The notes under the pieces are model-generated. The model was not told where the DNA came from and searched no databases. It saw nothing but the letters and a program-made list of their open reading frames with translations. A DNA stretch of 64,000 bases from Hyalangium minutum. GTDB taxonomy: Bacteria > Myxococcota > Myxococcia > Myxococcales > Myxococcaceae. A program made the position numbers and the translations under genes. Positions 1-12,437 of the stretch are shown here, one piece after another (position 1 is the first letter of the stretch; every line of letters begins with the position of its first letter). The DNA lies in contig NZ_JMCB01000023.1 of assembly GCF_000737315.1 (NCBI RefSeq), positions 62,001-126,000 on the forward strand, in the 5' to 3' direction.

Positions 1-957
1 CAGGTGGGTGGCCACCACGCGCTCCCAGCCGGCGATGCGGAAGTGGGTCGGCGTGTTGACGAGCTGGACGCGCCCGTCCGCCTCCTGCCGCACGAGGGTG
101 GCCGAGCCGCCGCCGTCGAGCTGGATGCCGGTGTGAGCCCCCTGCTCCAACAGAAGGTCCGCGGCCTCCTCCAGCGTGAGGCCCTCGCTGTATCCGGGCT
201 GCTTGCCCTCCACCGTGAGCAGCAACAGGTAGCGGCCTGTGGCATCTGCGCCCGCGAGCATGCGCGCGTACGGAATCCGGGTGAAGCCATCGTCCGCGAA
301 GTGCTCCTGGACCGTCGCGCCGTCCCGTACGACGTAGCCCAGCCCCGAGATGGCGTGCCACACCTCGCCCAGCGGGTGCACGAAGCTGACGCGGTTCTCC
401 CGGGACAGGTACAGGGTGACCATGCGCTTCTCCGGGCTGCCATAGACGCGCCCCTGAGAGGCCGCCATGCCAACGATGTGCACCGGCTGCCCCACGTGGG
501 GCTCGTAGTTCAGGGGGTGGGTGTTGTGAAACGGATAGAAGTAGTTCGCGTTGATCGCGAGCTGCACGCCGTGCCGCGCCGCGAAGCCGGTCGTCTTGTC
601 CGCGAATACCTCCCCCTCCGCGGAGGGCTGAGGGGGTGTCACTACGAACTCGACGCCAGGGGCCTGCAGATCCACCCAGACGAGGTGCGCCACCACGGGC
701 CGAGGCTGTTGGAACACCCTCCGCTCGTAGCGCACGCCCTCGAACCACTCCTCGCGGACCGGCGGAGGCTGGCTCCGGTGGGTGAACCAGAACCCGTAGC
801 CCCCCACGAGCCCCCCTGCGAGCCCCGGCAGCACGAGCGCAAGCCCTCCCAGGATCCGGATCCCCATGCGCACCCGCCACCGAATCAGCACACCCACGCC
901 CACGGCCAGCACGAGCGCGGAGAGGACCCACAGGGGAGCACCCAGCAGAGGCTTCAT
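1..957 (-). CDS. Phosphodiester glycosidase (NAGPA/DUF2233-like) membrane protein, 3'-partial (runs off window edge)
   Basis: Absent from the ORF track because it has no stop in the window. Manual translation from ATG at 957 gives MKPLLGAPLWVLSALVLAVGVG (TM), then QLAINANYFY, VEGKQPGYSEGLTLEEAA, IQLDGGGSATL and ERVVATHL, the typical motifs of this family. Confidence 0.8.
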   Translation of the reverse strand, partial: MKPLLGAPLWVLSALVLAVGVGVLIRWRVRMGIRILGGLALVLPGLAGGLVGGYGFWFTHRSQPPPVREEWFEGVRYERRVFQQPRPVVAHLVWVDLQAPGVEFVVTPPQPSAEGEVFADKTTGFAARHGVQLAINANYFYPFHNTHPLNYEPHVGQPVHIVGMAASQGRVYGSPEKRMVTLYLSRENRVSFVHPLGEVWHAISGLGYVVRDGATVQEHFADDGFTRIPYARMLAGADATGRYLLLLTVEGKQPGYSEGLTLEEAADLLLEQGAHTGIQLDGGGSATLVRQEADGRVQLVNTPTHFRIAGWERVVATHL

Positions 958-1064
958 GAGGTCTCATCCTATGAGAGAGCGCGGCACCCGAGCGGCATGA
1001 CGCTCACGCGTGATCGCGTTACACTGAGTCCACGGCGCCGTGAGCACGGGGCCGGACAGGAGGG

Positions 1065-1409
1065 ATGACGGTGTCTCAACAGGACCGGCGCAAACACCCA
1101 CGCTACCTCCTGCATCTGCCCGTCAAGCTCCACCGCGGAGAGCAGGAGCTGAACGCCCAGGTGATCAACGCCTCGGCGGGAGGCTGTCTGCTCCAGATGG
1201 CGGAGGCGCTCGCCCCAGGCGAGGTGCTCGAGGCCAGCCTCCCCCAGCTGAAGCTGCCGAGGACGCGGCTGATCGTGGTGCGGTGCTCGTCCACCCCCAC
1301 CGGCTACATGGTGGCCATGTACTTCGAGGCGACGCTGGCCGACGACGCCGCCATCCGTCATCTCTCGGGTGATCAGCTGGCCTTCGACAAGCCTCCGGTG
1401 GTGCACTAG
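1065..1409 (+). CDS. Single-domain PilZ protein
   Basis: RRKHPRY (RxxxR) and NASAGG ([D/N]xSxxG) c-di-GMP-binding motifs; RBS GGAGG upstream. Confidence 0.85.
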   Translation: MTVSQQDRRKHPRYLLHLPVKLHRGEQELNAQVINASAGGCLLQMAEALAPGEVLEASLPQLKLPRTRLIVVRCSSTPTGYMVAMYFEATLADDAAIRHLSGDQLAFDKPPVVH

Positions 1410-1456
1410 ATTCGGATCAGCGGATCCCCCACCGCGCAGCCTAGGAGAGAGCACAC

Positions 1457-1813
1457 GTGTCCCAGCACGAGCGGCGCCGGCACCAACGCTACCCGTTGCG
1501 GCTGGCCATCAAGGTTCATTGCCGTGGCGAGCAGATGGACGCAGACATCATCAACGCCTCGGCCAGCGGATGCCTGCTGCAGATGTCCATACCGCTCGAT
1601 CCGGGCGAGGCGCTCGACGTGAGCATCCCCCAGCTGAACATGCCCAAGGCCCGGCTGATCGTCGTGCGCTCCGAGTCCACCACCCTGGGCTACACCGTGG
1701 CCACGCGCTTCGATGTGGGCCTGGCCGATGAGCCCACCCTCAGCCGGCTCGCCTCGGAGACGCCGGGAAAGCCGCCCGAGGGCTCCGGCTCCGCGCCTCC
1801 CGTGACGCACTGA
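1457..1813 (+). CDS. Single-domain PilZ protein (tandem paralog)
   Basis: RRRHQRY and NASASG motifs; clearly similar to 1065-1409 (INAS.GCLLQM, E.L..S.PQL..P..RLIVVR). Confidence 0.85.
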   Translation: MSQHERRRHQRYPLRLAIKVHCRGEQMDADIINASASGCLLQMSIPLDPGEALDVSIPQLNMPKARLIVVRSESTTLGYTVATRFDVGLADEPTLSRLASETPGKPPEGSGSAPPVTH

Positions 1814-2025
1814 TCCGCGCCGCACCGCGTCTTTCCCGAGCGAACCGAGGCCCGGTTTTCTCAATTCTTGTGCTTTGACCCTAATAGAAAAGTGCGCTAT
1901 TCAAAGAACCGATCGATGGCTCGTTGCGGGTTGAAACGTCCGCAGGGACGCCCTGGAACGGTGGGGGGGAGCGATCCGAGAGCACCCACACACGATTCGG
2001 GCCCGGAAAGTCCGGAGGGAGCGCG

Positions 2026-3852
2026 ATGAAGAAGGTCATGAAGCACTTGGGGGAGCAGCAGCAGGGCTTCGCCGTTTCTCCGTTCGTGACCTTCCTGCTC
2101 GATCCGTCGTTCGCGCCGCAGGATCGGCTCCGGTTCCTGCCGTGCCTGGCGCCGCTGGTGATGGGCTCCGCCGAGCTGGCCAACAGCCTCACCGGTGAGG
2201 ACAGCCCTGAGCAGAACGGCCAGACTCCCGAGAGCCCGCACTGGGCGCCGTTCTTGAAGGATCTGCAGCTGCTGGATCTGCACTCCGTCGAGGACTTCAA
2301 CGCGATGCTGCAGTTGCTGTGGGGCGAGAACTGCGGCCCGGTGCGCGAAGTGCTCTACGACTTCATCTCGCTGGCGCGCTCGACCACCCCGCTGCGGCGG
2401 CAGATCATGCTGGCGGCGCTGCAGTCGGTGGGCCAGGTGAGCTTGATCGCGATGGAGCAGGTGGCGCGCGAGCTGGAGGCCAGCACCCGCAAGCACCTGG
2501 GCACCATGGACTCGCTGCGCACCCAGGTTCAGCTGGGCGAGTGGAGCGCCACCGTCTTCGAGCTGACGCTGACGGACGAGGAGGAAGAGCAGGCCATCCG
2601 CGACATCAACCAGGTGTTCTCGCTGATGGATGAGCTGACCGACTACCTGCTGGAGCACGTGCAGGAGTGGTTCGCCGGCCAGGAGAAGCCCTCGCGGCAG
2701 GCCATCATGGCCGAGCAGATCGCCAAGATGAACTTCCGGGACTTCGGCAACACGCGCATCGCCTCGCTGTGCAAGTCGGCCGGCTTCACCTCGGTGGATA
2801 CGCAGAAGGTGCAGCAGTTCTTCACCTTCATGACGGACTCGTGGAACTCGCGCCTGGTGGGCGAGGCGTCGCCCTGGAAGTCCGACATCTCGGATGACCA
2901 CACCCCCTTCGAGCTCTCCATCGCGCTGGAGGGCAGCCGCCCCGAGATCCGCTTCCTCATCGAGGCGCAGAACCACCCCACCACCCTGCAGACCAGCTGG
3001 GATGACGGGCTGGCGCTCAACGAGCGGCTCAACAAGGAGTTCGGCCTCTCGCTGGAGCACTTCAACCGGGTGAAGGACCTGTTCGAGCCGCACAATCCCC
3101 AGGCGCGCTTCTCCCTGTGGCATGCCTTCTGCCTCAAGCCGGACCGAGGCGCGGAGGTCAAGGTCTACCTCAACCCGCAGGCGCGCGGCCCCGAGCACGC
3201 CAACGCGATTGTGGAGGAGGCGCTGTCTCGGCTGGGCTTCGCCCATGCGTGGCGCTTCCTGTCCCAGGTGGTGATGAAGCGCGGAGCCCAAGACCAGGTG
3301 CTCTACTTCTCCCTGGACATGGGCGGGCAGGCGGTCTCCCGCGTGAAGATTTACGTGGCGCACCGGGATGCGGCCCCCGAGGACATCGAGGCGGCCATGT
3401 CCCAGGCCCGGGAGTACTCGGCCGGTGAGGCGCGGGCCTTCTGCGAGGCCATCCAGGGTGACGACAACAAGTTCTCTGCGCCGCGCTCGACACTGACGTG
3501 CTGGGCGTTCACCTCGGACGACGACGACAAGCCCTACAGCGCCACGCTGCACTGCCCCATCCGCTGCTATGCGGACAACGACCGGGATGCGCTGCGGCGC
3601 GTCCGCGCGGTGCTCGACCCCAAGAGCCACGCGGTGCTGGACCGGTGCGTGTGGGCGCTGGCCAACCGGCCGCTGGAGGCCGGCGTGGGGTTGATTCAGT
3701 GGGCCTCCATGCGTCGCGAAGGCGGCCGGGTGCGCACCACCTTCTACCTGGCCACCGAGGCCTACGGCACGGTGGCGCCTCGAAAGTCGACCTCACACCG
3801 CGTCCACGTGCCGGACCTGATGAACGCCGAGGTCTTCCAGCTCAGCGCCTGA
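2026..3852 (+). CDS. Fusion: N-terminal heme-oxygenase-like (AetD-like) domain + C-terminal tryptophan dimethylallyltransferase (ABBA/DMATS)
   Basis: ATG 2026 after RBS GGAGGGA, 608 aa. C-terminal part has SDISDDHTPFELS, FSLWHAF, VKVYLNP, YFSLD..SRVKIY (bacterial Trp-DMATS motifs). N-terminal ~215 aa (MKKVMKHL..PF..FL.D..AP.DRL.F.PC, HW..FL.DL.LL, LW, EE.A...N.VF) follows the pattern I recall for AetD-type HO-like proteins. Confidence 0.75.
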   Translation: MKKVMKHLGEQQQGFAVSPFVTFLLDPSFAPQDRLRFLPCLAPLVMGSAELANSLTGEDSPEQNGQTPESPHWAPFLKDLQLLDLHSVEDFNAMLQLLWGENCGPVREVLYDFISLARSTTPLRRQIMLAALQSVGQVSLIAMEQVARELEASTRKHLGTMDSLRTQVQLGEWSATVFELTLTDEEEEQAIRDINQVFSLMDELTDYLLEHVQEWFAGQEKPSRQAIMAEQIAKMNFRDFGNTRIASLCKSAGFTSVDTQKVQQFFTFMTDSWNSRLVGEASPWKSDISDDHTPFELSIALEGSRPEIRFLIEAQNHPTTLQTSWDDGLALNERLNKEFGLSLEHFNRVKDLFEPHNPQARFSLWHAFCLKPDRGAEVKVYLNPQARGPEHANAIVEEALSRLGFAHAWRFLSQVVMKRGAQDQVLYFSLDMGGQAVSRVKIYVAHRDAAPEDIEAAMSQAREYSAGEARAFCEAIQGDDNKFSAPRSTLTCWAFTSDDDDKPYSATLHCPIRCYADNDRDALRRVRAVLDPKSHAVLDRCVWALANRPLEAGVGLIQWASMRREGGRVRTTFYLATEAYGTVAPRKSTSHRVHVPDLMNAEVFQLSA

Positions 3853-3879
3853 GGCGCTCGGCGGAGCACTCCCTGCAGA

Positions 3880-5448
3880 CTATGGGTCTTCTGAAGTAGG
3901 CCCGCGTTGACCGCTGATGAAGATGGGCATGTAGCAGAGCCCTTCCCATTCATAAGTCCCTTCGGAGCAAGGAGGTCTCACGCGAGCGGGGGCCTCGTAC
4001 CAACACCCGCCAAGAATCTCGATTTGCCCTGACTTGCACGGGGCACGACGCTGCCCAGCCAAAGGAGTTTTGGGCACGTCGGCAGAAAATCCTCCGGGCC
4101 CATACGGCGGTATCTCTTCCTTGGGGGCCACGGAGGCAAAGCCGTCACCCAATCCTGAGGGTCCCCCATCCACTCCTTCAGGTTGCTGGCCCGGTTGAAT
4201 CTGTGTCAGGGCTGCGAGTTCCTGCTGTCGAGTCGCCCCCGGGTGCCAATCCAGCGCTATGAACAACAGCAGGGCCAGCGCTGTCACTGCGCCGAAGAGT
4301 CTCTGAACTGGGAAACGGCCCCCCGGCTTCTCCGTGGGCGCTAGCGCCCTCCTTTGATCCTGCTCCTGCTGCCGCTCCCGCTCTGCCTTGGCACCCGCAT
4401 CGCGCTCCTTCGCGCGCCGCACCACCTCCACGTCCCGCATCCGCAGGCGATGCCCCAGACGCTGGCCGACTGGGCCCTCCCCTGATCTTCGTTCAGCGGC
4501 AGGCTGCGCCTCCCACGCAAACAGCGGCTCGTCCGCTTTCGGCCCGGCCTCTCGCGCCGCCCGCTCCGCAGCCTCGGCGGCCTTGCGCGGGTCCCCATTG
4601 AAGCGCTTGGAGGGGCTCACTGCCAACAGCTGCAAGATGAGCGCGTCCAACGCATCGCACACCTGTGGATTGAGCGCGCTCGGAGGACGCGGCCCCTTCC
4701 CGTCCCACCGCCAGACCTCGGCTCCCTCCTCCTCCGGCTGCGTCGGAGGCGGATACTCATCCGTCACCAGCCGGTAGGCCGTCACTCCCAGCGCGAACAG
4801 GTCATCACTGGCGCGGGCCTCGTAGTGTGCCCGAAGCTGGAAGACGTTGAACCGATGGTAGGCCCACGCCTCTGGGCTCCGGTACGCCTCCGTGCCCGGT
4901 GGCAGGATCTCCCGCGTCAGCACCTCGGCCCCCTCCACGGCCCCCGAGCCGAAGTCCATGAGGAACGGCCGCCCATCCGCCAGCCGCACCAGCACGTTGT
5001 CTCCCTTCACGTCCCGGTGCACCCCACCCGCCTCCTGCATCGCCGCCAGCGCCCCCGCCAGCTGAGCCATCAACTCCAGCGCCTGACGAGAGGTGATGTT
5101 GCGCTGGCTGGACCAGTCGTACAGCGCCACGCCCTCCACCCACTCCATCACCACGTACGGAAATACCCCCAGCGCACACTCCCACTCGCCATGGCCGCAC
5201 AGGCGCGGCACGTTCGGGTGCTGTATTCGCGAGAGCAATTCCACCTCTCGCTCGAACCGCCGGTCCCGAGCGTGCAGCGCCATCTTCAAGGCGAACGGAA
5301 GGGCCTGCACGTCCCCCTCGCGCACCACGCGGTACACAGTGCCGTAGGTGCCCTGTCCCCTCCACGCCACCACCCGCCACGGTCCTATCCGAGTGCCCAC
5401 CCTCAACGAAGCCGGGTTCTGATCCCACGCTCGCAGCCTCGTCCCCAT
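3880..5448 (-). CDS. Ser/Thr protein kinase (myxobacterial type with TM and Cys-rich C-terminus)
   Basis: GQGTYGTVY, ALKMA, HRDVKGDN, DFG, GTEAYRSPE, DLFALG; hydrophobic segment LFGAVTALALLLFIAL; C-terminal RAPC..GGCW..PPC..GLCYMP. Confidence 0.92.
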   Translation of the reverse strand: MGTRLRAWDQNPASLRVGTRIGPWRVVAWRGQGTYGTVYRVVREGDVQALPFALKMALHARDRRFEREVELLSRIQHPNVPRLCGHGEWECALGVFPYVVMEWVEGVALYDWSSQRNITSRQALELMAQLAGALAAMQEAGGVHRDVKGDNVLVRLADGRPFLMDFGSGAVEGAEVLTREILPPGTEAYRSPEAWAYHRFNVFQLRAHYEARASDDLFALGVTAYRLVTDEYPPPTQPEEEGAEVWRWDGKGPRPPSALNPQVCDALDALILQLLAVSPSKRFNGDPRKAAEAAERAAREAGPKADEPLFAWEAQPAAERRSGEGPVGQRLGHRLRMRDVEVVRRAKERDAGAKAERERQQEQDQRRALAPTEKPGGRFPVQRLFGAVTALALLLFIALDWHPGATRQQELAALTQIQPGQQPEGVDGGPSGLGDGFASVAPKEEIPPYGPGGFSADVPKTPLAGQRRAPCKSGQIEILGGCWYEAPARVRPPCSEGTYEWEGLCYMPIFISGQRGPTSEDP

Positions 5449-5720
5449 GTGTCCTCCTGGCGATCGGAGCCACCCACTCCGCTCCTCGCCACCACCCTAC
5501 CTCATGGGTTACACGGAAACCATCCTCCGTGTCAGGTATGATTCCCGCCGCACTGGGTGCAGAGCTGCCTGGGAGTGTTCACGGTTCCGGTGACCTGGAG
5601 ATTGATGCCAAAAAAGGCCTGTGGAGGTGATTTTCCGCATGATTTCCTCGCTCACCGGCTCTCGATCGGGGACGGCTCCATGACGGGCCCGGGAAACGGC
5701 ATTTCGAACAGGAGCGACCG

Positions 5721-7235
5721 ATGGGACTTCAGCAGCAGTTCATGCCGCGCTTTGGGAAGTGGGTGCTCGCCGCCATCGCCGTGCTCGTGGCGGTCCCGGC
5801 GCACGCGGCGCACGCTGCTCAGGCGCAGCCACAAGCCACGCTGCCGGGCACGCCCGCGGGCCGGCAGGCCGCAGCGCTGCTCCAGGTGTTCAACGAGGGC
5901 AATGGGCCCAAGATGCGCGCCTTCATCCAGGACCACTACGCGAAGGCGGCCCTGGCCCAGCACCCCGCCCAACACCACCTCGGCACTTTCGGGGAGCTCT
6001 GGGATAACACGAACGGGCTGACCCTCCAGAAGGTGGAATCGTCGAGCGAGCGCACGATCGTCCTGATGGCGCAGGACAAGCTGGCCGGCGAATCCGTGCG
6101 GCTGCAAGTCGACGTCGAGGCGAAGAAGCCGCATGGCATTCTGGGAGTGAAGGTCCTGCCACTCGGGCCGCCCTCGAGTAACAGCGGCCCGCCGCTGACC
6201 GACGAGGAGGTGTCCCAGGCGGTCCAGGCCTACGTCGAGAAGCTGGCCGCGGCCGACGCTTTCTCAGGGACGGTGCTGATCGCGCGCGGGGACAAGCCCA
6301 TCTATCGGGGCGCGTTCGGCCTGGCGAGCCGTGCCTTTCAGGTGCCCAATCGGCTGGACACGAAGTTCAACCTCGGCTCGATGAACAAGATGTTCACCGC
6401 GGTCGCGATCGCGCAGCTCGTCGAGGCCGGGAAGCTCTCGTTCGAGGACACGGTGGGGAAGATCCTGCCGGATTACCCGAACAAGGCCGTCGCCGAGAAG
6501 GTGACCGTCCATCAACTCCTCACTCACACCTCGGGCCTCGGCAGCTTCTTCAATGACAAGTACTTCGAGGCGGACAAGAGCCGCTTCCGCGAGATCAAGG
6601 ACTTCCTCCCGCTGTTCGTGGACGAGCCGCCCGCATTCGAGCCAGGGACGCGCTGGAGCTACAGCAACTCCGGCTTCCTCCTGCTCGGGGCGATCATCGA
6701 GAAGGCCTCCGGGCAGAACTACTTCGATTATGTGCGCGAGCACATCTACAAGCCCGCCGGCATGACGAACTCGGACTCATACGAGATCGATCGCGATCCG
6801 CCGAACCTCGCCGTCGGCTACACGTCGCAGGGCCCGGGCAATCAGCAGAGCCCCCGGAGAGACTGGAACAACCTCTTCCTTCACGTGGTCAAGGGTGGGC
6901 CGGCGGGCGGCGGGTTCTCGACCGTCGAGGACCTGTGGCGGTTCTCCCTGGCGCTCCAGGGGCACAAGCTGCTCGCCGCCAAGTACACGGAGCTCGTGAC
7001 CACGGGCAAGGTGCAGCCCCATCCCGAGAGCAAGGAGGAGAAGTACGCCTACGGCTTCTTCGATGAGCAGGTCCCGGGAGCCCACATCATTGGCCACGGC
7101 GGCGGATTCCCAGGCATCAACAGCCAGCTCGATATCTATCTGGGCAAGGGCTACACCGTCGCGGTGATGTCCAACTACGATCCCCCGACGGCGGGACGCG
7201 TCGCCCGGAGGATCCGCACGCTGCTCCTTCGGTGA
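5721..7235 (+). CDS. Secreted serine hydrolase, beta-lactamase/class C (PBP-like) family
   Basis: Signal peptide; SMNK (SxxK), YSN, HGGG motifs; LLTHTSG. Confidence 0.9.
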   Translation: MGLQQQFMPRFGKWVLAAIAVLVAVPAHAAHAAQAQPQATLPGTPAGRQAAALLQVFNEGNGPKMRAFIQDHYAKAALAQHPAQHHLGTFGELWDNTNGLTLQKVESSSERTIVLMAQDKLAGESVRLQVDVEAKKPHGILGVKVLPLGPPSSNSGPPLTDEEVSQAVQAYVEKLAAADAFSGTVLIARGDKPIYRGAFGLASRAFQVPNRLDTKFNLGSMNKMFTAVAIAQLVEAGKLSFEDTVGKILPDYPNKAVAEKVTVHQLLTHTSGLGSFFNDKYFEADKSRFREIKDFLPLFVDEPPAFEPGTRWSYSNSGFLLLGAIIEKASGQNYFDYVREHIYKPAGMTNSDSYEIDRDPPNLAVGYTSQGPGNQQSPRRDWNNLFLHVVKGGPAGGGFSTVEDLWRFSLALQGHKLLAAKYTELVTTGKVQPHPESKEEKYAYGFFDEQVPGAHIIGHGGGFPGINSQLDIYLGKGYTVAVMSNYDPPTAGRVARRIRTLLLR

Positions 7236-7448: not shown

Positions 7449-8612
7449 TCACCCCGCGGGCGCTGTGAGCCGGCGCTGCCAGAAGTCCTCGCCGGCCCAG
7501 CGTTGCTCCAGGGTGTAGTGGGCATGACGCGCGGACAGGTAGCGGGTGAATTCCTCTGCCTCCCGCCGCGCGTAGTCCTCCAGCGCTCCGCTGCTTCCTC
7601 CCAGCGCAGAACATAGGGCCCGCGCCGCCGTGCGCCCGGTGCGCAGCCCCTTGAGGATCCCGCTCGACGAGAGCGGATCCCACATCGCCGCGGCGTCCCC
7701 CACCGCCACCCAGCCTGCCCCCGCCGCGTGCTCCAGGCGGCTCGTCTCGCAGCGGCGCACCTGCAGCCGTGACACCGCCTCGAGCTCCCCTACCCGCTCG
7801 CGCAGGTACCGGGTCGTGGAGAAGAGCGCGCTCCACCCCGCCGGCTGCAAGGCACCGTAGCGCTGGAGCACATCCACATCGCTCAGCAGCGTGAGGATGA
7901 GACGGCCCTCGGGCAGCGGCGCGGCGTACCACCAGCCCTGGGGCGTGGCCTCCACCACCAGGTGTTGCTGCTGGAACCCGGCCGGCCTGTCGATGACCCC
8001 GGACACGCTGCACAGCGCGTCCCAGTTGCGCCGCCGCATGCCGCTCTGCCGCGCCACCTGGGCCGAGCGCCCGGTCGCATCCACCAGGGCCTCGCAGCGC
8101 AGCTCCGCTGGGCCCCGGGGCGTGCGGACCTTCACCCTCCACCCGTGTCCCTCGCGCTCCAGGTGGGTGACGCAGGTGCTCCGCCACAGCGGCACCTGGA
8201 GCGACCGGGCATGGCTGGCCAGCAGCCCGTCCAGGTGCCGGCGCTCCACGTGCCAGCCGCTCCCGTAGGGATTGGTGAGGAACGAGTGGTGCTGGGGCTG
8301 CTCCGAGCCCCAGGTGGCTTCCAGGCCATGCGACTCCAGGAAGCCGTCGGTCTCCAACGGCTCGGGTGCCAGCAACTGCCGCAGCTCGGCGAAGGCCACC
8401 GGGGAGAGCGTCTCCCCGGGACGCCAGGGAGAGTAGTCCGTGCGCTCCAGGACGCAGACGGAGACGCCCGCCCTCACCAGGGTGAGCGCGGCGCTCAGGC
8501 CGGCCACGCCGCCTCCCACCACCACGACGTCATAGGAGGATCGCAAATCTGGTGCTTCAAAGGCCATGGACTCCATCGGGTCCTCCAGGCTGGAGATGGG
8601 AGCGGTGCTCAT
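7449..8612 (-). CDS. LodB/GoxB-like FAD-dependent oxidoreductase (CTQ cofactor maturation)
   Basis: VVGGGVAG Rossmann motif, RPGETL, GWHVERRHLD, VDATGR, GWWYAAPLP, AVGDAA..DPLSSSGI, E.RW...FW.RR; starts 8 bp downstream of the lodA-like stop. Confidence 0.85.
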   Translation of the reverse strand: MSTAPISSLEDPMESMAFEAPDLRSSYDVVVVGGGVAGLSAALTLVRAGVSVCVLERTDYSPWRPGETLSPVAFAELRQLLAPEPLETDGFLESHGLEATWGSEQPQHHSFLTNPYGSGWHVERRHLDGLLASHARSLQVPLWRSTCVTHLEREGHGWRVKVRTPRGPAELRCEALVDATGRSAQVARQSGMRRRNWDALCSVSGVIDRPAGFQQQHLVVEATPQGWWYAAPLPEGRLILTLLSDVDVLQRYGALQPAGWSALFSTTRYLRERVGELEAVSRLQVRRCETSRLEHAAGAGWVAVGDAAAMWDPLSSSGILKGLRTGRTAARALCSALGGSSGALEDYARREAEEFTRYLSARHAHYTLEQRWAGEDFWQRRLTAPAG

Positions 8613-8620
8613 GAGGGCGG

Positions 8621-10504
8621 CTAGGAGGCCTTGGCCGCTGGCGTCGCTGCGGAGGCGACGGCTGTCGGGGCGCTCTTCTCCTGGGTCTCGAAGAAGGCCT
8701 CGCCCTCGTTGATGACGAAGCCGAGCTTCCACCAGTTCGCCTGCATCTGGATGTACATGGCCATCTCGACGGCGCTGGTGCCCTCAGGCGCGCTGTTCTT
8801 GATCTCCGGCTTCTTCGCCTCGACCTCGGCGACCGCATCCAGGGCCCGAGTCCAGGAGACCATCTGGATGTCTCCCTTCTTCGCGTAGACATCATCCGGA
8901 CGGTGGGCGGCCCACCACATGTGGTACATGCCGTCGCCCTGGAAGGCGTTCTTCTTGAAAGACTTGGGGTCGAAGAACTGCTTCTTGCACTGGTAGAAGT
9001 CCGCCTGCCAGGGCAGCGCCATCTGCTGCGAGAAGAACCCCGGGCCAATGGCGAGATTCGCCGTGGTGGGGAACACCGTGCCCGAGTGCTTGATGCGGAA
9101 GGGAGCCGCGTACAGCTCCGGCAGGCGCACCAGCCAGCTGCAGTCGATGCCAGGGAAGAAGGGGCCGCCCACGCTGTTCTCCAGCGCGGCCCGATCGAGC
9201 CCCCCGGCGAAGATCTCCGTGTCGATGGCGTGGGCCTTCGTCGCGTCCCAGTCCTCCTCGAACTGTCCCTCGGCCCAGCGCTTGAGCACCGCGTACTGCA
9301 CCCGCGTGAGCGTCATGAAGTAGCCCTTCTTCATCCCCTCGTTAGGCGCTTCGTCCGTGTAGAAATCCCCGAATCCCTTGGGCATCAGCAGGGGCTCCTG
9401 GGTGGCGCTGAAGGGATCCCTCAGGTAGCCGAAGATCGTCTTGCGCAGGCGCTGGCCCTTGACCGAGGCCACCGTGCCGAGATCCTGCTCCACGCCCGCC
9501 AGGGAGGCATGGAAGGACTTGGAGGCCTCGGGGTTGTGGACATTGCGGTGCCCGAGGGCCCGATCGAGGATGGGGAACACTTCCTGCCTGAAGGAGGGCT
9601 TGTAGTTCTGGAAGGAATGGGTCGTCGTGTTCCAATCTGCGCGCTGCTTCTCGAGCCGGGCAAACAGGCCCTTGTCGAGCAAGCCGTCAGTGGTGGAGAT
9701 CGGCACATCCTTGGAGCGCACCGCCAGGTCCCACATGGTGTCGAACAGGCGCACCACGTTGCCCACCGCGGGTCCGAAATCCGGCGGTCCCACCAGCAGC
9801 CACGCGCCGTTGTTGCCCTCCAGCTTCGCCGTCTGGGTCTTGCCTCCCTCCGTGTAGGTGATCTCCGCGCTCACGGGCCCGTCCGACATGTCGTCGAACC
9901 AGTGATCATTGTTCACGTAGTCGTCGATGAGCTTGCCCTGGTCTGTCTTGCTGGACTGGCCAAGCCCGCCCAGCACGAGCAGGCGGCCCTGCTCATCCGT
10001 GCGCAGTTCGCCCAGCGTGGTGATGGGGATGTTGCGATTGGGATTGGTGAGGGACACGCGCGGCTGGCTCTTGCCCGAGATGGACTTGAGCCCGGGGTCG
10101 ATGACGAGCAACCGCTCGCGATCGGCCGCGGCCTGGACATGCGCATTGCGCTTCGCTTTCCAGGCGCCGTTGTCCGCCCCCTCCTGCCCATTGAACTTGA
10201 AAAAGGCGGCCTTGCGGTTGGCCAGGTGGACATTCCATTTGATGCCGGTGATGTCAAAGCTGCCCTGGGTGATTTCCCGCAGGGGGCTCAGCACACCGCT
10301 CTGCATCGTGTATTCAAAGACACGGAAGCGAGCCGCCTGCCGCTTGACGCGGCCCTGGCTGTCCTTGAAGGGCTGGAACTTCTTCTGGGCGATGTCGAAG
10401 TTGGGAGGCTGGTTGGGATGCTCGGGGCCGATGTAGAACTCGTCTGGGGAGTTGCCAACGCGGGCGACGCCAACGGCAGGATGGATGCGAAAGAATCGGG
10501 CCAT
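8621..10504 (-). CDS. LodA/GoxA family CTQ-dependent amino acid oxidase
   Basis: FRIHPAVGVARVGNS, VKRQAARFRVF, WNVHLANRKA, LGELRTD..GRLLVLGG, NND.WFDD.SDGPV, GGPFFPGID, MALPWQADFYQC (Asp and CTQ Cys), WWAAHRPD (candidate CTQ Trp), WWKLGFV. Confidence 0.92.
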   Translation of the reverse strand: MARFFRIHPAVGVARVGNSPDEFYIGPEHPNQPPNFDIAQKKFQPFKDSQGRVKRQAARFRVFEYTMQSGVLSPLREITQGSFDITGIKWNVHLANRKAAFFKFNGQEGADNGAWKAKRNAHVQAAADRERLLVIDPGLKSISGKSQPRVSLTNPNRNIPITTLGELRTDEQGRLLVLGGLGQSSKTDQGKLIDDYVNNDHWFDDMSDGPVSAEITYTEGGKTQTAKLEGNNGAWLLVGPPDFGPAVGNVVRLFDTMWDLAVRSKDVPISTTDGLLDKGLFARLEKQRADWNTTTHSFQNYKPSFRQEVFPILDRALGHRNVHNPEASKSFHASLAGVEQDLGTVASVKGQRLRKTIFGYLRDPFSATQEPLLMPKGFGDFYTDEAPNEGMKKGYFMTLTRVQYAVLKRWAEGQFEEDWDATKAHAIDTEIFAGGLDRAALENSVGGPFFPGIDCSWLVRLPELYAAPFRIKHSGTVFPTTANLAIGPGFFSQQMALPWQADFYQCKKQFFDPKSFKKNAFQGDGMYHMWWAAHRPDDVYAKKGDIQMVSWTRALDAVAEVEAKKPEIKNSAPEGTSAVEMAMYIQMQANWWKLGFVINEGEAFFETQEKSAPTAVASAATPAAKAS

Positions 10505-10520: not shown

Positions 10521-12437
10521 TCAGTGGGTTTGGGAGTACAGCTTCTCGAGGAGTTCGATCAGGCGCTTCTTGTCCGTCTCACCCAGCTCCCGATCCACGG
10601 GCATCTTGAAGCCAACGATCTTCGCCTGCGTGGGATTGGGATCGAGCCGGTCGAGGATGGGGCTGCTCTGGTCCGCGACCATGTCCTTGCTGAAGATGTC
10701 GTAGCGAATGGCGCCGTGGCAGCGGTAGCAATACCTGTTCATCAGGCCGAGCAGCTCCTTGTCCTCGGCGTTCGACGTCCAGTTCAGGGGGGCCGAGGTG
10801 GGCTTGCGGTCCTTCTTGAGCGGATGGCCCACGTTGGAGAAGGAGAATGCGCGCTTGATGAGGTCGGGCTCCGGCGCCACCGAAGTCTTGTGGATCTCCA
10901 GCCACTTGTTGGTCGCGGCGAGGGGGAAGCCCTTGGGGTTCACGCGCTTCTGCATGACCGCCACCTCCTGGTTGAGCTGGCGCATCACGTCGAAGGCCGC
11001 GGCATATCGGGCCGCCTTGACGTCCTTGCCCGCGTCGAAGAGCGCGGCGGGCGCATCGGCCTTGTTCAGGGCGGGGAAGTCCCCATCCGTGAGGCGGTCT
11101 AGCCAGTGGTCGGTGTCGAGGTAGTTGAGCACCGCCTGACCGCGCAGCGAGCCATGGCAGGTGTCACACCCGTTGGGGACGAAGTAGGGAGCGCTGCCAT
11201 GAAGCGTGCCGGCATCGAAGGAGGCGTCGAGCGCGTAGGACAGCTTGTAGCCCTTGTCCGAAGGGCCGAAGTCCATCCAGTAGATGCTGTTGAGCTCCGC
11301 GTTCTGGCATGCGGTCTGGCCCGCCTTGCACTGGGTGAGCAGGGCCACCTGCGTGTTGACGGAGCCATTCTTCACCAACAGGGGCACGTTGGTGCCGCCA
11401 AAGGGGCTATGGGTGGGGGGCGAGGTGAAGTGGTTGAAGAGGATCCAGGCGCTCTCCACGAAGTGGTTCTGCGCCTGGGAGCCCGGGCGGGCCTTCATGC
11501 GCACCAGCCGACGCCAACCGACCTTGCGCTGCGCGGGAGCGACGCTGAAGTCGACGATCTTGGGCGCGAAGAAACGGGAGACGAGAATGTCTTTGCTGTC
11601 TCCGCTGCCTCCGCTCGCGGTGCCATTCTGCACGACGACGGTCCACTGGGCCACGGCCTGTTTCCGAGGGTCGGTGGCATGGATCGTGACCGTGTCAGGA
11701 ACGCTGGAGGAGGGTGAGCATTTGCTGCACCGGGCCAGGTAGTTGCCTGTGCTCGCCTTGAAGGCGACCTTCCCGTTGGGAAGGAGCTCCGGGGTGAAGC
11801 GCGCGACAGCAGGCGGAGTGGCGCCGAGCGCGCTGACGGTCGCGAAGTCCTTGATGGTGGCTCTATCGATGCATCCAGTGCACCGTGCCACGTAAAAGCC
11901 GGTGTCCGCCTTGAGCGCGATCGTGCCATCGCCCGCGTCCACCACCTCGAAGAGGGTGGAGGGCTCGGAGTTCGCACTGGCGTGGACGGTCACGGTGTCC
12001 ACCACCTCGAGCGTAGTGCCTTGCTGGCAACCTCTGCAGCGGGCGAAGAACAGACCCGTGTCCGCCTTGAGCGAGACCTTGCTGCCCACGGGCAGCACCT
12101 GCGCGACGGTCGCCCTCCCCTCCATCAACGACTCGGGCGTCGCGAACTCAATGTCCTCGGGGGTGAACTCCTTGAACCCGAGGTAGCTCAACAGGTCCTT
12201 GAAGGTCGCCTGCGCCTCAATCGTGGCGGGCGTGAGAACTCCGAGCTTCTTGGAGAGCGCCTTGTAGTACTTGGACGCCTCCTCCGGGCTGCCATTGTTG
12301 AGGGCGCTCTCCTGTGGCTCGGAGGCGCTGGCGGCCTGGGCAAAGCCGGGCACGGCGTGCAGTGCCCCCCACAAGGCGCAGAAGGCGAGGAGTGAGCTTC
12401 GACGGGGATGCGATGAAGTGAGCGCGAACATGCTCAC
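10521..12437 (-). CDS. Secreted protein with inserted fascin-like beta-trefoil domain and two c-type heme motifs
   Basis: Signal peptide (RRSSLLAFCALWGALHAVPGFAQA); three repeats [VI][SA][LF]KA[DS]TG.[FY].ARC..C; CxxCH motifs CDTCH (11154-11168) and CYRCH (10716-10730); 16 bp from the lodA-like start. Confidence 0.75.
   Translation of the reverse strand: MSMFALTSSHPRRSSLLAFCALWGALHAVPGFAQAASASEPQESALNNGSPEEASKYYKALSKKLGVLTPATIEAQATFKDLLSYLGFKEFTPEDIEFATPESLMEGRATVAQVLPVGSKVSLKADTGLFFARCRGCQQGTTLEVVDTVTVHASANSEPSTLFEVVDAGDGTIALKADTGFYVARCTGCIDRATIKDFATVSALGATPPAVARFTPELLPNGKVAFKASTGNYLARCSKCSPSSSVPDTVTIHATDPRKQAVAQWTVVVQNGTASGGSGDSKDILVSRFFAPKIVDFSVAPAQRKVGWRRLVRMKARPGSQAQNHFVESAWILFNHFTSPPTHSPFGGTNVPLLVKNGSVNTQVALLTQCKAGQTACQNAELNSIYWMDFGPSDKGYKLSYALDASFDAGTLHGSAPYFVPNGCDTCHGSLRGQAVLNYLDTDHWLDRLTDGDFPALNKADAPAALFDAGKDVKAARYAAAFDVMRQLNQEVAVMQKRVNPKGFPLAATNKWLEIHKTSVAPEPDLIKRAFSFSNVGHPLKKDRKPTSAPLNWTSNAEDKELLGLMNRYCYRCHGAIRYDIFSKDMVADQSSPILDRLDPNPTQAKIVGFKMPVDRELGETDKKRLIELLEKLYSQTH

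Follow-up and report, generated by a model that had tools for sequence, protein, structure and literature searches.

A conserved, probable AetD-like pseudo-enzyme domain fused to a predicted tryptophan prenyltransferase in Hyalangium minutum and its relatives

AetD, the nitrile synthase of Aetokthonos hydrillicola (PDB 8JI2–8JI7 and 8TWN/8TWT/8TWW), and its homologue SktA, a skatole synthase, are recent additions to diiron enzymology, and homologues of the two have been reported as of unknown function (PMC11869266). Here, we analysed a fusion gene of Hyalangium minutum that joins an N-terminal AetD-like domain to a C-terminal domain of the bacterial dimethylallyltryptophan synthase (DMATS) type. 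The gene lies in a stretch of 64,000 nt (contig NZ_JMCB01000023.1, positions 62,001 to 126,000), called "the window" below, to which positions refer unless a related locus is named. AetD is homologous to the N-domain of the fusion over the whole domain, a heme-oxygenase (HO)-like helical bundle, and AetD and SktA share with it the motifs PC, HW..FL.DL, LW, and EE...VF. In contrast to both enzymes, the fusion lacks the diiron site (E140Q, no HX3EX2H motif), has changed residues at the substrate clamp, and is not a standalone protein. In the aet and skt loci, as in loci of relatives of the fusion, an HO-like diiron oxidase (HDO) is paired with an enzyme that decorates the tryptophan ring; however, this partner is a halogenase in the former and a DMATS in the latter, and the hosts are a cyanobacterium and a myxobacterium, respectively.

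The C-domain has the ABBA barrel of 6-DMATS from Micromonospora (6ZRX/6ZRY), IptA (7W8U), the 5-DMATS SCO7467 (6ZRZ), and PriB (5INJ), with identities of 29–32%. Bacterial tryptophan DMATS enzymes and the fusion have in common the Glu of the DDxTPxE motif and the ladder of Arg, Lys, and Tyr residues that binds the diphosphate. The fusion differs from them by about 235 additional N-terminal residues that form a domain of their own, by a neighbouring PilZ gene, and by a score under the cut-off of the respective NCBIfam subfamily. A precedent in natural-product biosynthesis for an HO-like diiron domain that shares its chain with a second catalytic domain is SznF (PMC13108848), but the HDO of SznF is active and its partner is a cupin, not a prenyltransferase. 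Both domains of the fusion belong, by sequence comparison, to known families. In the literature searched (HDO with DMATS, AetD with prenyltransferase), we found no description of an HDO–DMATS fusion, of a pseudo-HDO domain, or of a link to PilZ, in line with the original prediction, which knew of no such fusion.

Our preferred reading, held with moderate confidence, is that the fusion is an active prenyltransferase with a non-catalytic pseudo-HDO domain, which serves as a scaffold or regulatory module and is possibly linked to PilZ proteins. Residues 1–206 align with residues 11–229 of AetD, i.e. with nearly the whole chain (phmmer E 1.3e-16, ~22% identity), and a search with the family profile yielded 347 AetD-like clusters. 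The AetD pattern that had been given in the original prediction (MK.., PC, HW..FL.DL.LL, LW, EE.A...N.VF) is visible in the alignment. AlphaFold2 (AF2) models of the N-domain, alone as well as within the full-length protein, are all-helical. When the N-domain model was compared with the PDB using Foldseek, the best 21 matches were all AetD (E ~4e-7, TM 0.60–0.70), followed by TenA, PolF, UndA, CADD, HO-1, and PqqC, showing that the model is a seven-helix bundle with the heme-oxygenase-like fold that had been predicted. The pLDDT values of the N-domain are higher in the full-length than in the lone model, a difference that is confounded by the depth of the alignments (74 versus 16 sequences) and was not used as evidence. 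On its own, the N-domain had no meaningful match in Pfam or NCBIfam (T6PP_N E 0.09, GatC E 0.014), and it is recognisable solely via AetD structures and profile searches.

The diiron ligands of AetD are D76, H79, E140, H172, E176, and H179, and the exchange of any single one for Ala abolishes activity (PMC11611611, PMC10654658). We checked these positions in the phmmer alignment and in an independent MAFFT alignment. Ligand-type residues of the 3-His/3-carboxylate set are present in the fusion at two of the six positions (E69, H72). Q133 stands where AetD has E140, and across the family this position is occupied by Q, K, E, H, R, or Y. The core helix alpha-3, which carries H172, E176, and H179 of AetD in the HX3EX2H motif, reads SLRTQVQLGEW in the fusion, and the three ligand columns are devoid of a ligand-type residue. 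The motif is absent from all 46 full-length members that were recovered, in the Hyalangium/Myxococcaceae group, by the survey of the fusion's distribution that had been proposed with the original prediction, and the position of H79 (H72 of the fusion) is replaced in 13 of them (Y/N/S/V/C/I/L/Q). Among possible alternative metal ligands in the helices alpha-2 and alpha-3 (H157, D162, E172, E144), none is conserved in the family. The same alignments revealed all six ligands in 11 intact relatives (seven domains of reverse-order fusions, three standalone neighbours, and one overlapping partner), showing that ligands can be detected where they are present. A census of AetD-like domains beyond these proteins covered 152 domains, about 90 of which contain the complete (D/E)HEH(E/D)H set.

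The substrate contacts have changed as well. In AetD, F44 and I146 form the indole clamp and Y167 contacts the carboxylate (PMC10654658, PMC11611611); in the fusion these residues are replaced by L44, S139, and G159 or Thr, respectively. By homology and ligand alignment, the N-domain descends from an AetD-type diiron tryptophan oxidase and its metal site is lost. Because the diiron ligands have been lost, the domain is predicted to be non-catalytic and unable to perform AetD or SktA chemistry.

The N-domain nevertheless does not have the signature of a decaying domain. In the closest pairs it changes about threefold faster than the C-domain, and the dN/dS values (Nei-Gojobori), which are probably inflated by codon bias, are 0.28–0.76 for the N-domain versus 0.08–0.48 for the C-domain. 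Comparison of 16 diverse members yielded 22 invariant N-domain positions and 19 further positions with a conservation of at least 90%, including Leu-Arg 164–165; K156 is nearly invariant in the fusion family. Because of the dN/dS values and the invariant positions, we regard the N-domain as a pseudo-enzyme domain under purifying selection.

The prenyltransferase domain, in contrast to the N-domain, has retained its key residues. Residues 281–530 match Pfam PF11991 (Trp_DMAT) with 57.5 bits (cut-off 25), and residues 236–590 match the solved bacterial tryptophan prenyltransferases from end to end, i.e. 6-DMATS (6zry, E 8.5e-48), PriB (1.5e-43), IptA (4.7e-41), and 5-DMATS (1.3e-35). The full-length AF2 model (74 sequences in the alignment) has a mean pLDDT of 88 and a pTM of 0.75, with values mostly above 90 in the C-domain. 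Superposition of the C-domain model using Foldseek gave target-normalised TM values of 0.90–0.92 with 6-DMATS (6zry/6zrx; rmsd 2.1–2.4 Å) and of 0.88–0.91 with 5-DMATS, PriB, and IptA, in agreement with an ABBA prenyltransferase barrel. D290, D291, P294, and E296 of the DDHTPFE motif (residues 290–296) are invariant in the 74 relatives, as are R309, R439, K441, Y443, and R513, while K379, Y381, and Y574 are nearly so. We take E296 to be the catalytic Glu and the Arg/Lys/Tyr set to be the diphosphate-binding ladder, as in the structures of FgaPT2 and bacterial DMATS. The C-terminal bacterial Trp-DMATS with an intact DDxTPxE Glu, as originally proposed, is thus borne out (6-DMATS E 8.5e-48, TM ~0.91), and the domain is very likely active, as predicted from motifs and model. 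Its substrate is most likely L-tryptophan or a close indole derivative, with dimethylallyl diphosphate (DMAPP) as the donor and transfer to the benzenoid ring; the best solved relatives are all tryptophan C5/C6 prenyltransferases, with 31% identity, which is too low to assign specificity.

Full-length relatives with 47–93% identity were found in Hyalangium species, in metagenome-assembled genomes of Myxococcaceae, and in metagenomes, and are labelled "tryptophan dimethylallyltransferase family protein" in the source databases. A scan of species-representative genomes gave 13 loci, all of them within the Hyalangium/Myxococcaceae group (related loci and proteins are numbered with L and P below). 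The family is divided into two paralogous clades, A (query-like) and B (~50% identity), both of which are represented in at least five assemblies (L009/L015, L010/L014, L012/L013, L008/L017, and L006/L007/L016). Outside the family, the nearest DMATS domains are those of standalone proteins (P0055–P0061, 55–61% identity) and of fusions with the reverse domain order (P0052/P0054, 54–55%). At a greater distance, there are DMATS proteins with an HDO domain at the C-terminus, either AetD-like or of the PF14518 type.

The reverse-order fusions combine the same two families as the H. minutum fusion, but the HDO is C-terminal, and the AetD-like ones keep the six ligands. This applies to all seven of them, i.e. 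P0052 and P0054 (608 aa; P0054 in L004 5032–6858 and L005 4355–6181), P0099, P0101, P0111, P0115, and P0116. Fusions of DMATS with a PF14518 HDO include P0072, P0077, P0094, and P0112, and inspection by eye revealed ligand-like motifs in these four. The sequences make it plausible that the reverse-order DMATS–HDO fusions are true bifunctional enzymes. A neighbouring PilZ gene was not seen at the P0054, P0099, and P0077 loci. The P0099 locus has two adjoining FAD_binding_4/cytokinin-dehydrogenase-like genes. Tandem AetD-like proteins of about 500–630 aa were also observed (P0194, P0201, P0203, P0208, P0227, P0231, P0251, P0259, and P0260); the first domain has the six ligands in five of the nine, and the second always lacks D76 and E176/H179 (pattern "LHEH..").

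In the window, two genes for single-domain PilZ proteins lie ahead of the fusion gene on the same strand. Both match PF07238 (distal, E 2.3e-12; proximal, E 1e-11) and contain the RxxxR and (D/N)xSxxG motifs of cyclic di-GMP (c-di-GMP) receptors, i.e. RKHPR/NASAGG and RRHQR/NASASG, respectively. Each of the 12 distinct loci with sufficient flanking sequence (L002, L003, L008–L017) has a same-strand PilZ gene with intact RxxxR and NxSxxG motifs 177–538 bp upstream of the fusion, in both clades and with differing other neighbours; the distal PilZ gene is also found in the clade-A loci L008, L009, and L010. The c-di-GMP motifs are kept in 15 of 16 PilZ genes of related loci, and the match of the 16th ends short of RxxxR. 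The clade-B PilZ proteins are 72–87% identical among themselves and 44–65% identical to those of clade A; their divergence appears to parallel that of the fusions.

Three of the clade-A loci, namely L002 (H. rubrum), L008, and L011, additionally encode a separate, fully liganded AetD homologue (30–36% identity to AetD) at a distance of 1–2 kb on the downstream side of the fusion. Furthermore, in L019/L020 a standalone DMATS gene extends into the start of the gene for an intact AetD homologue, which is followed by that for a longer PilZ protein, so that the triad of DMATS, intact AetD-like protein, and PilZ also exists in a different gene order. The sequences make the standalone homologues candidate enzymes that act on prenyl-tryptophan. 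No such homologue was found at the L009, L010, and L012 loci, and a six-frame search of the 64-kb window did not reveal a second AetD-like gene. The pairing of DMATS with AetD chemistry that the original prediction had assumed thus applies to relatives with intact AetD homologues, but not to this window. A search with the H. rubrum homologue returned no match labelled H. minutum, with few matches carrying organism labels.

Taken together, these data would be compatible with the following mechanism. The DMATS barrel would be the catalyst, with DMAPP as the dimethylallyl donor, and would most likely prenylate L-tryptophan or a closely related indole at the benzenoid ring. The pseudo-HDO domain may act as a scaffold for protein–protein interaction or ligand binding that controls or localises the prenyltransferase. 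Its likeliest partner would be the c-di-GMP-binding PilZ protein encoded directly upstream, with c-di-GMP as the likely input. In relatives with a separate, fully liganded AetD homologue, this homologue may be a further partner and process prenyl-tryptophan onward. Because no active AetD homologue is encoded nearby in H. minutum, the locus is expected to yield dimethylallyl-tryptophan, or a derivative that unlinked enzymes form from it, rather than a nitrile for which the fusion alone would suffice.

Several observations weigh against this reading. The C-domain missed the cut-off of NCBIfam TIGR03429 (101.6 versus 163.85 bits) over nearly the full model length, and because of this score we class it, by sequence, as a divergent member of the bacterial DMATS family; the assignment of tryptophan and DMAPP rests on the 31% identity to C5/C6 prenyltransferases. 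The H. minutum protein retains E69 and H72, leaving room for a weak mononuclear metal site, and an active AetD homologue could be encoded elsewhere in the draft genome. The link to PilZ is guilt by association from gene adjacency, and a promoter-like element separates PilZ from the fusion, so that co-transcription is not required.

Two alternatives for the role of the N-domain have to be considered. The domain could be a metal-free ligand sensor with a remodelled pocket for tryptophan, its prenylated form, or a product of the pathway, in which Arg165, near the former Fe1 site, would take the carboxylate, for allosteric feedback or feed-forward tuning. AetD holds the amino-acid head group of its substrate via Fe1 (PMC11611611), and purifying selection, the nearly invariant K156, and the nearly invariant Leu-Arg at or beside the H172 position would be in agreement with such a sensor. 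However, the pocket is poorly conserved between the clades (F44/L; F48/S/L/A at the F48 position), and the column of Arg165 depends on the aligner; we regard the putative sensor as unlikely. We give a similarly low probability to a relic of an ancestral alliance of DMATS and AetD-like proteins, with a purely structural role in folding, solubility, or dimerisation, which would receive no regulatory input and for which the adjacency of PilZ would be incidental. Such a relic could account for the faster evolution of the N-domain; AetD is a homodimer (PMC10654658, PMC11611611), and the closest active relatives of the pseudo-domain are myxobacterial AetD homologues (27–31% identity). In contrast, the ~22 invariant positions kept across the family, and the adjacency of PilZ in 12 of 12 loci, argue against it; inherited synteny alone would hardly account for the latter, because it is kept across paralogs diverged down to ~48% identity that otherwise have different neighbours.

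A bifunctional protein, in which an active AetD-like oxidase makes an indole nitrile or aldehyde from tryptophan or prenyl-tryptophan and the C-domain prenylates, is very improbable, because in spite of the clear AetD homology and fold, the retained E69 and H72, and the intact relatives fused to or beside closely related DMATS domains, which indicate that the pairing of the chemistries is real, four of the six ligands are absent without a conserved His, Asp, or Glu in alpha-2/alpha-3 to replace them, H72 itself is variable, all three substrate contacts have changed, and AetD variants with a single ligand exchange are dead (PMC10654658). The synthesis of a prenylated indole nitrile or aldehyde by a single gene, which the original prediction had favoured, is not supported, since it would require a working diiron site, which is missing here, and HX3EX2H is absent throughout the family. 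Once the loss of the diiron site rules against the nitrile route, the fallback of that prediction, a regulated prenyltransferase, survives as the probable function and coincides with the preferred reading, i.e. an active prenyltransferase with a non-catalytic pseudo-HDO domain.

A more specific version of the preferred reading is speculative and rather doubtful in its entirety. The fusion would be a c-di-GMP-gated prenyl-indole module, in which the PilZ adaptor binds to the pseudo-HDO domain and thereby turns the fused prenyltransferase on or off, and the family would also include single-protein DMATS–AetD enzymes as well as operons for the synthesis of prenyl-indole nitriles, aldehydes, or prenyl-skatoles. 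If true, the gating would tie second-messenger signalling to a prenylated tryptophan or indole signal or volatile in myxobacteria, and the DMATS–AetD enzymes (such as P0054) and operons would be to prenylated compounds what the aet and skt pathways are to brominated ones.

Three features of these loci are undescribed in the literature searched. The coupling of AetD-like and DMATS proteins is recurrent (fusions in both orders, operons, and neighbours), which predicts that prenyl-tryptophan is a natural class of HDO substrates. In one whole fusion lineage, the oxidase appears to have become a pseudo-enzyme domain that is conserved but free of metal. This pseudo-HDO–DMATS lineage is strictly linked to PilZ genes of the c-di-GMP type. 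For genome mining, a match to AetD that is fused to DMATS does not alone predict nitrile chemistry; the ligand check distinguishes candidates for expression (P0054-type fusions, the AetD-like gene that is separate in H. rubrum) from proteins that are likely to make prenyl-tryptophan only.

The coordinates of the features are compiled in Table 1. The existence of a single 608-aa ORF, uninterrupted by stops, was confirmed by translation. The GC fraction at third codon positions (GC3) is 0.92, as for coding sequence in a window of 67% GC, a ribosome-binding site is present 4 nt ahead of ATG 2026, and this ATG encodes the start Met of the homologues; we accept the frame and the start because of these three findings. 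TTG 1924 was rejected as a start, since the homologues begin at Met 2026, and a 577-aa ORF on the opposite strand (1897–3630) is a shadow ORF of the high-GC fusion gene. The identical protein is annotated as a single gene (Pfam Trp_DMAT) on contig JMCB01000023.1 of NCBI assembly GCA_000737315.1.

Table 1 Features of the fusion locus in the window and AetD homologues of related loci (positions with an L number refer to the respective locus)
Feature	Position	Strand	Evidence or remark
Complete CDS, pseudo-HDO + DMATS	2026..3852	+	608 aa; GC3 0.92; annotated gene in GCA_000737315.1
N-terminal AetD-homologous HO-like bundle, aa 1-219, degenerate diiron site	2026..2682	+	phmmer, AF2, Foldseek, ligand census
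E69-S-P-H72, sole AetD ligand positions kept (D76->E69, H79->H72)	2230..2241	+	alignments
Q133 at the position of the AetD Fe2 ligand E140	2422..2424	+	alignments
aa 159-172 (TMDSLRTQVQLGEW), helix equivalent to AetD core alpha-3, HX3EX2H replaced	2500..2541	+	alignments
DMATS-type ABBA prenyltransferase domain, aa 236-590	2731..3795	+	Pfam, NCBIfam, PDB matches, AF2, Foldseek
DDHTPFE motif, aa 290-296, presumed catalytic Glu296	2893..2913	+	alignment to solved structures
Proximal PilZ gene (single domain, 118 aa) with intact RxxxR and NxSxxG	1457..1813	+	PF07238 match
Distal PilZ gene, 114 aa, motifs intact	1065..1409	+	PF07238 match
Promoter-like TTGACC-17 nt-TATTCA in the PilZ-fusion spacer	1875..1903	+	read from sequence
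Ribosome-binding site GGAGGGAG	2014..2021	+	sequence and aligned loci
Standalone AetD homologue	L002 11167-11901	+	six diiron ligands
Standalone AetD homologue	L011 11172-11966	+	six diiron ligands
Standalone AetD homologue	L008 9888-10679	-	six diiron ligands
AetD homologue overlapping DMATS	L020 9104-9814	+	six diiron ligands

The TTGAC core of the promoter-like element is kept in 10 of 12 aligned loci, including both clades, and is degenerate in L002 and L017. The element was missed by a consensus scan because the last base of its -10 hexamer is an A. A run of four to seven G residues is present about 55 nt before the ATG in all 12 loci (G7 at 1963–1969 in the window), often with a C-rich run ahead of it. 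An Rfam scan of positions 900–4100 gave no match with E ≤1, and RNAalifold analysis of the 5′ leaders of the 12 loci predicted just an unconvincing 3-bp helix between the C run and the G run and no convincing covarying structure. A consensus scan did not reveal a terminator between PilZ and the fusion.

On the 3′ side of the fusion, the window contains a convergent Ser/Thr kinase gene, a gene of the beta-lactamase family, and a LodA/LodB-like pair; judged from the encoded proteins, this neighbourhood is not recognisable as a biosynthetic cluster. The pair encodes a LodB-like flavoprotein (7449–8732, minus strand) and a LodA-like quinoprotein amino-acid oxidase (8621–10504, minus strand), and is followed by a gene for a 638-aa protein without a Pfam match (10521–12437, minus strand). 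None of the three was found by tblastn in the related loci L001–L018.

The clade-B loci have different neighbours, i.e. genes for a tryptophanase-like lyase, a 208-aa protein, one or two StyA-like flavin monooxygenases (FMOs), and sometimes an O-methyltransferase. Downstream of the fusions in L003/L014, L013, L015, and L016, a convergent tryptophanase-like beta-eliminating lyase, the 208-aa protein, which has no Pfam match, and a StyA-like FMO are encoded; the O-methyltransferase was observed in L003/L014 and L016, and a second StyA-like gene in L003/L014. In actinomycetes, type A DMATS clusters contain a tryptophanase and type B clusters an FMO (PMC3617294), and the clade-B genes echo both types. 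The gene content of the clade-B set suggests a prenyl-indole pathway. A tblastn search of the window did not detect homologues of the tryptophanase, the StyA-like FMO, or the 208-aa protein. In L003, a 1039-aa protein with PilZ and HSP70/MreB-like parts is encoded near the clade-B fusion (2712–5831, minus strand).

A gene for an XerC/D-type tyrosine recombinase flanks the unit of PilZ and fusion on varying sides (L009 9911–10882, L010 9873–10823, L002 6430–7332). In L002, the fusion is separated from the DcrB/PD40/GidA genes by accessory genes, while in L009 and L010 the DcrB/PD40/GidA genes follow just past the recombinase gene and accessory genes are lacking. This arrangement points to a gain or loss of accessory genes at this spot. 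A 141-aa protein with a hydrophobic, membrane-like N-terminus and no Pfam match is encoded in L002 (9897–10322), L011 (9927–10349), L004 (4480–4905), and L005 (3803–4228); it is 73–91% identical between the loci, and adjoins pseudo-HDO fusions as well as the intact reverse fusion P0054.

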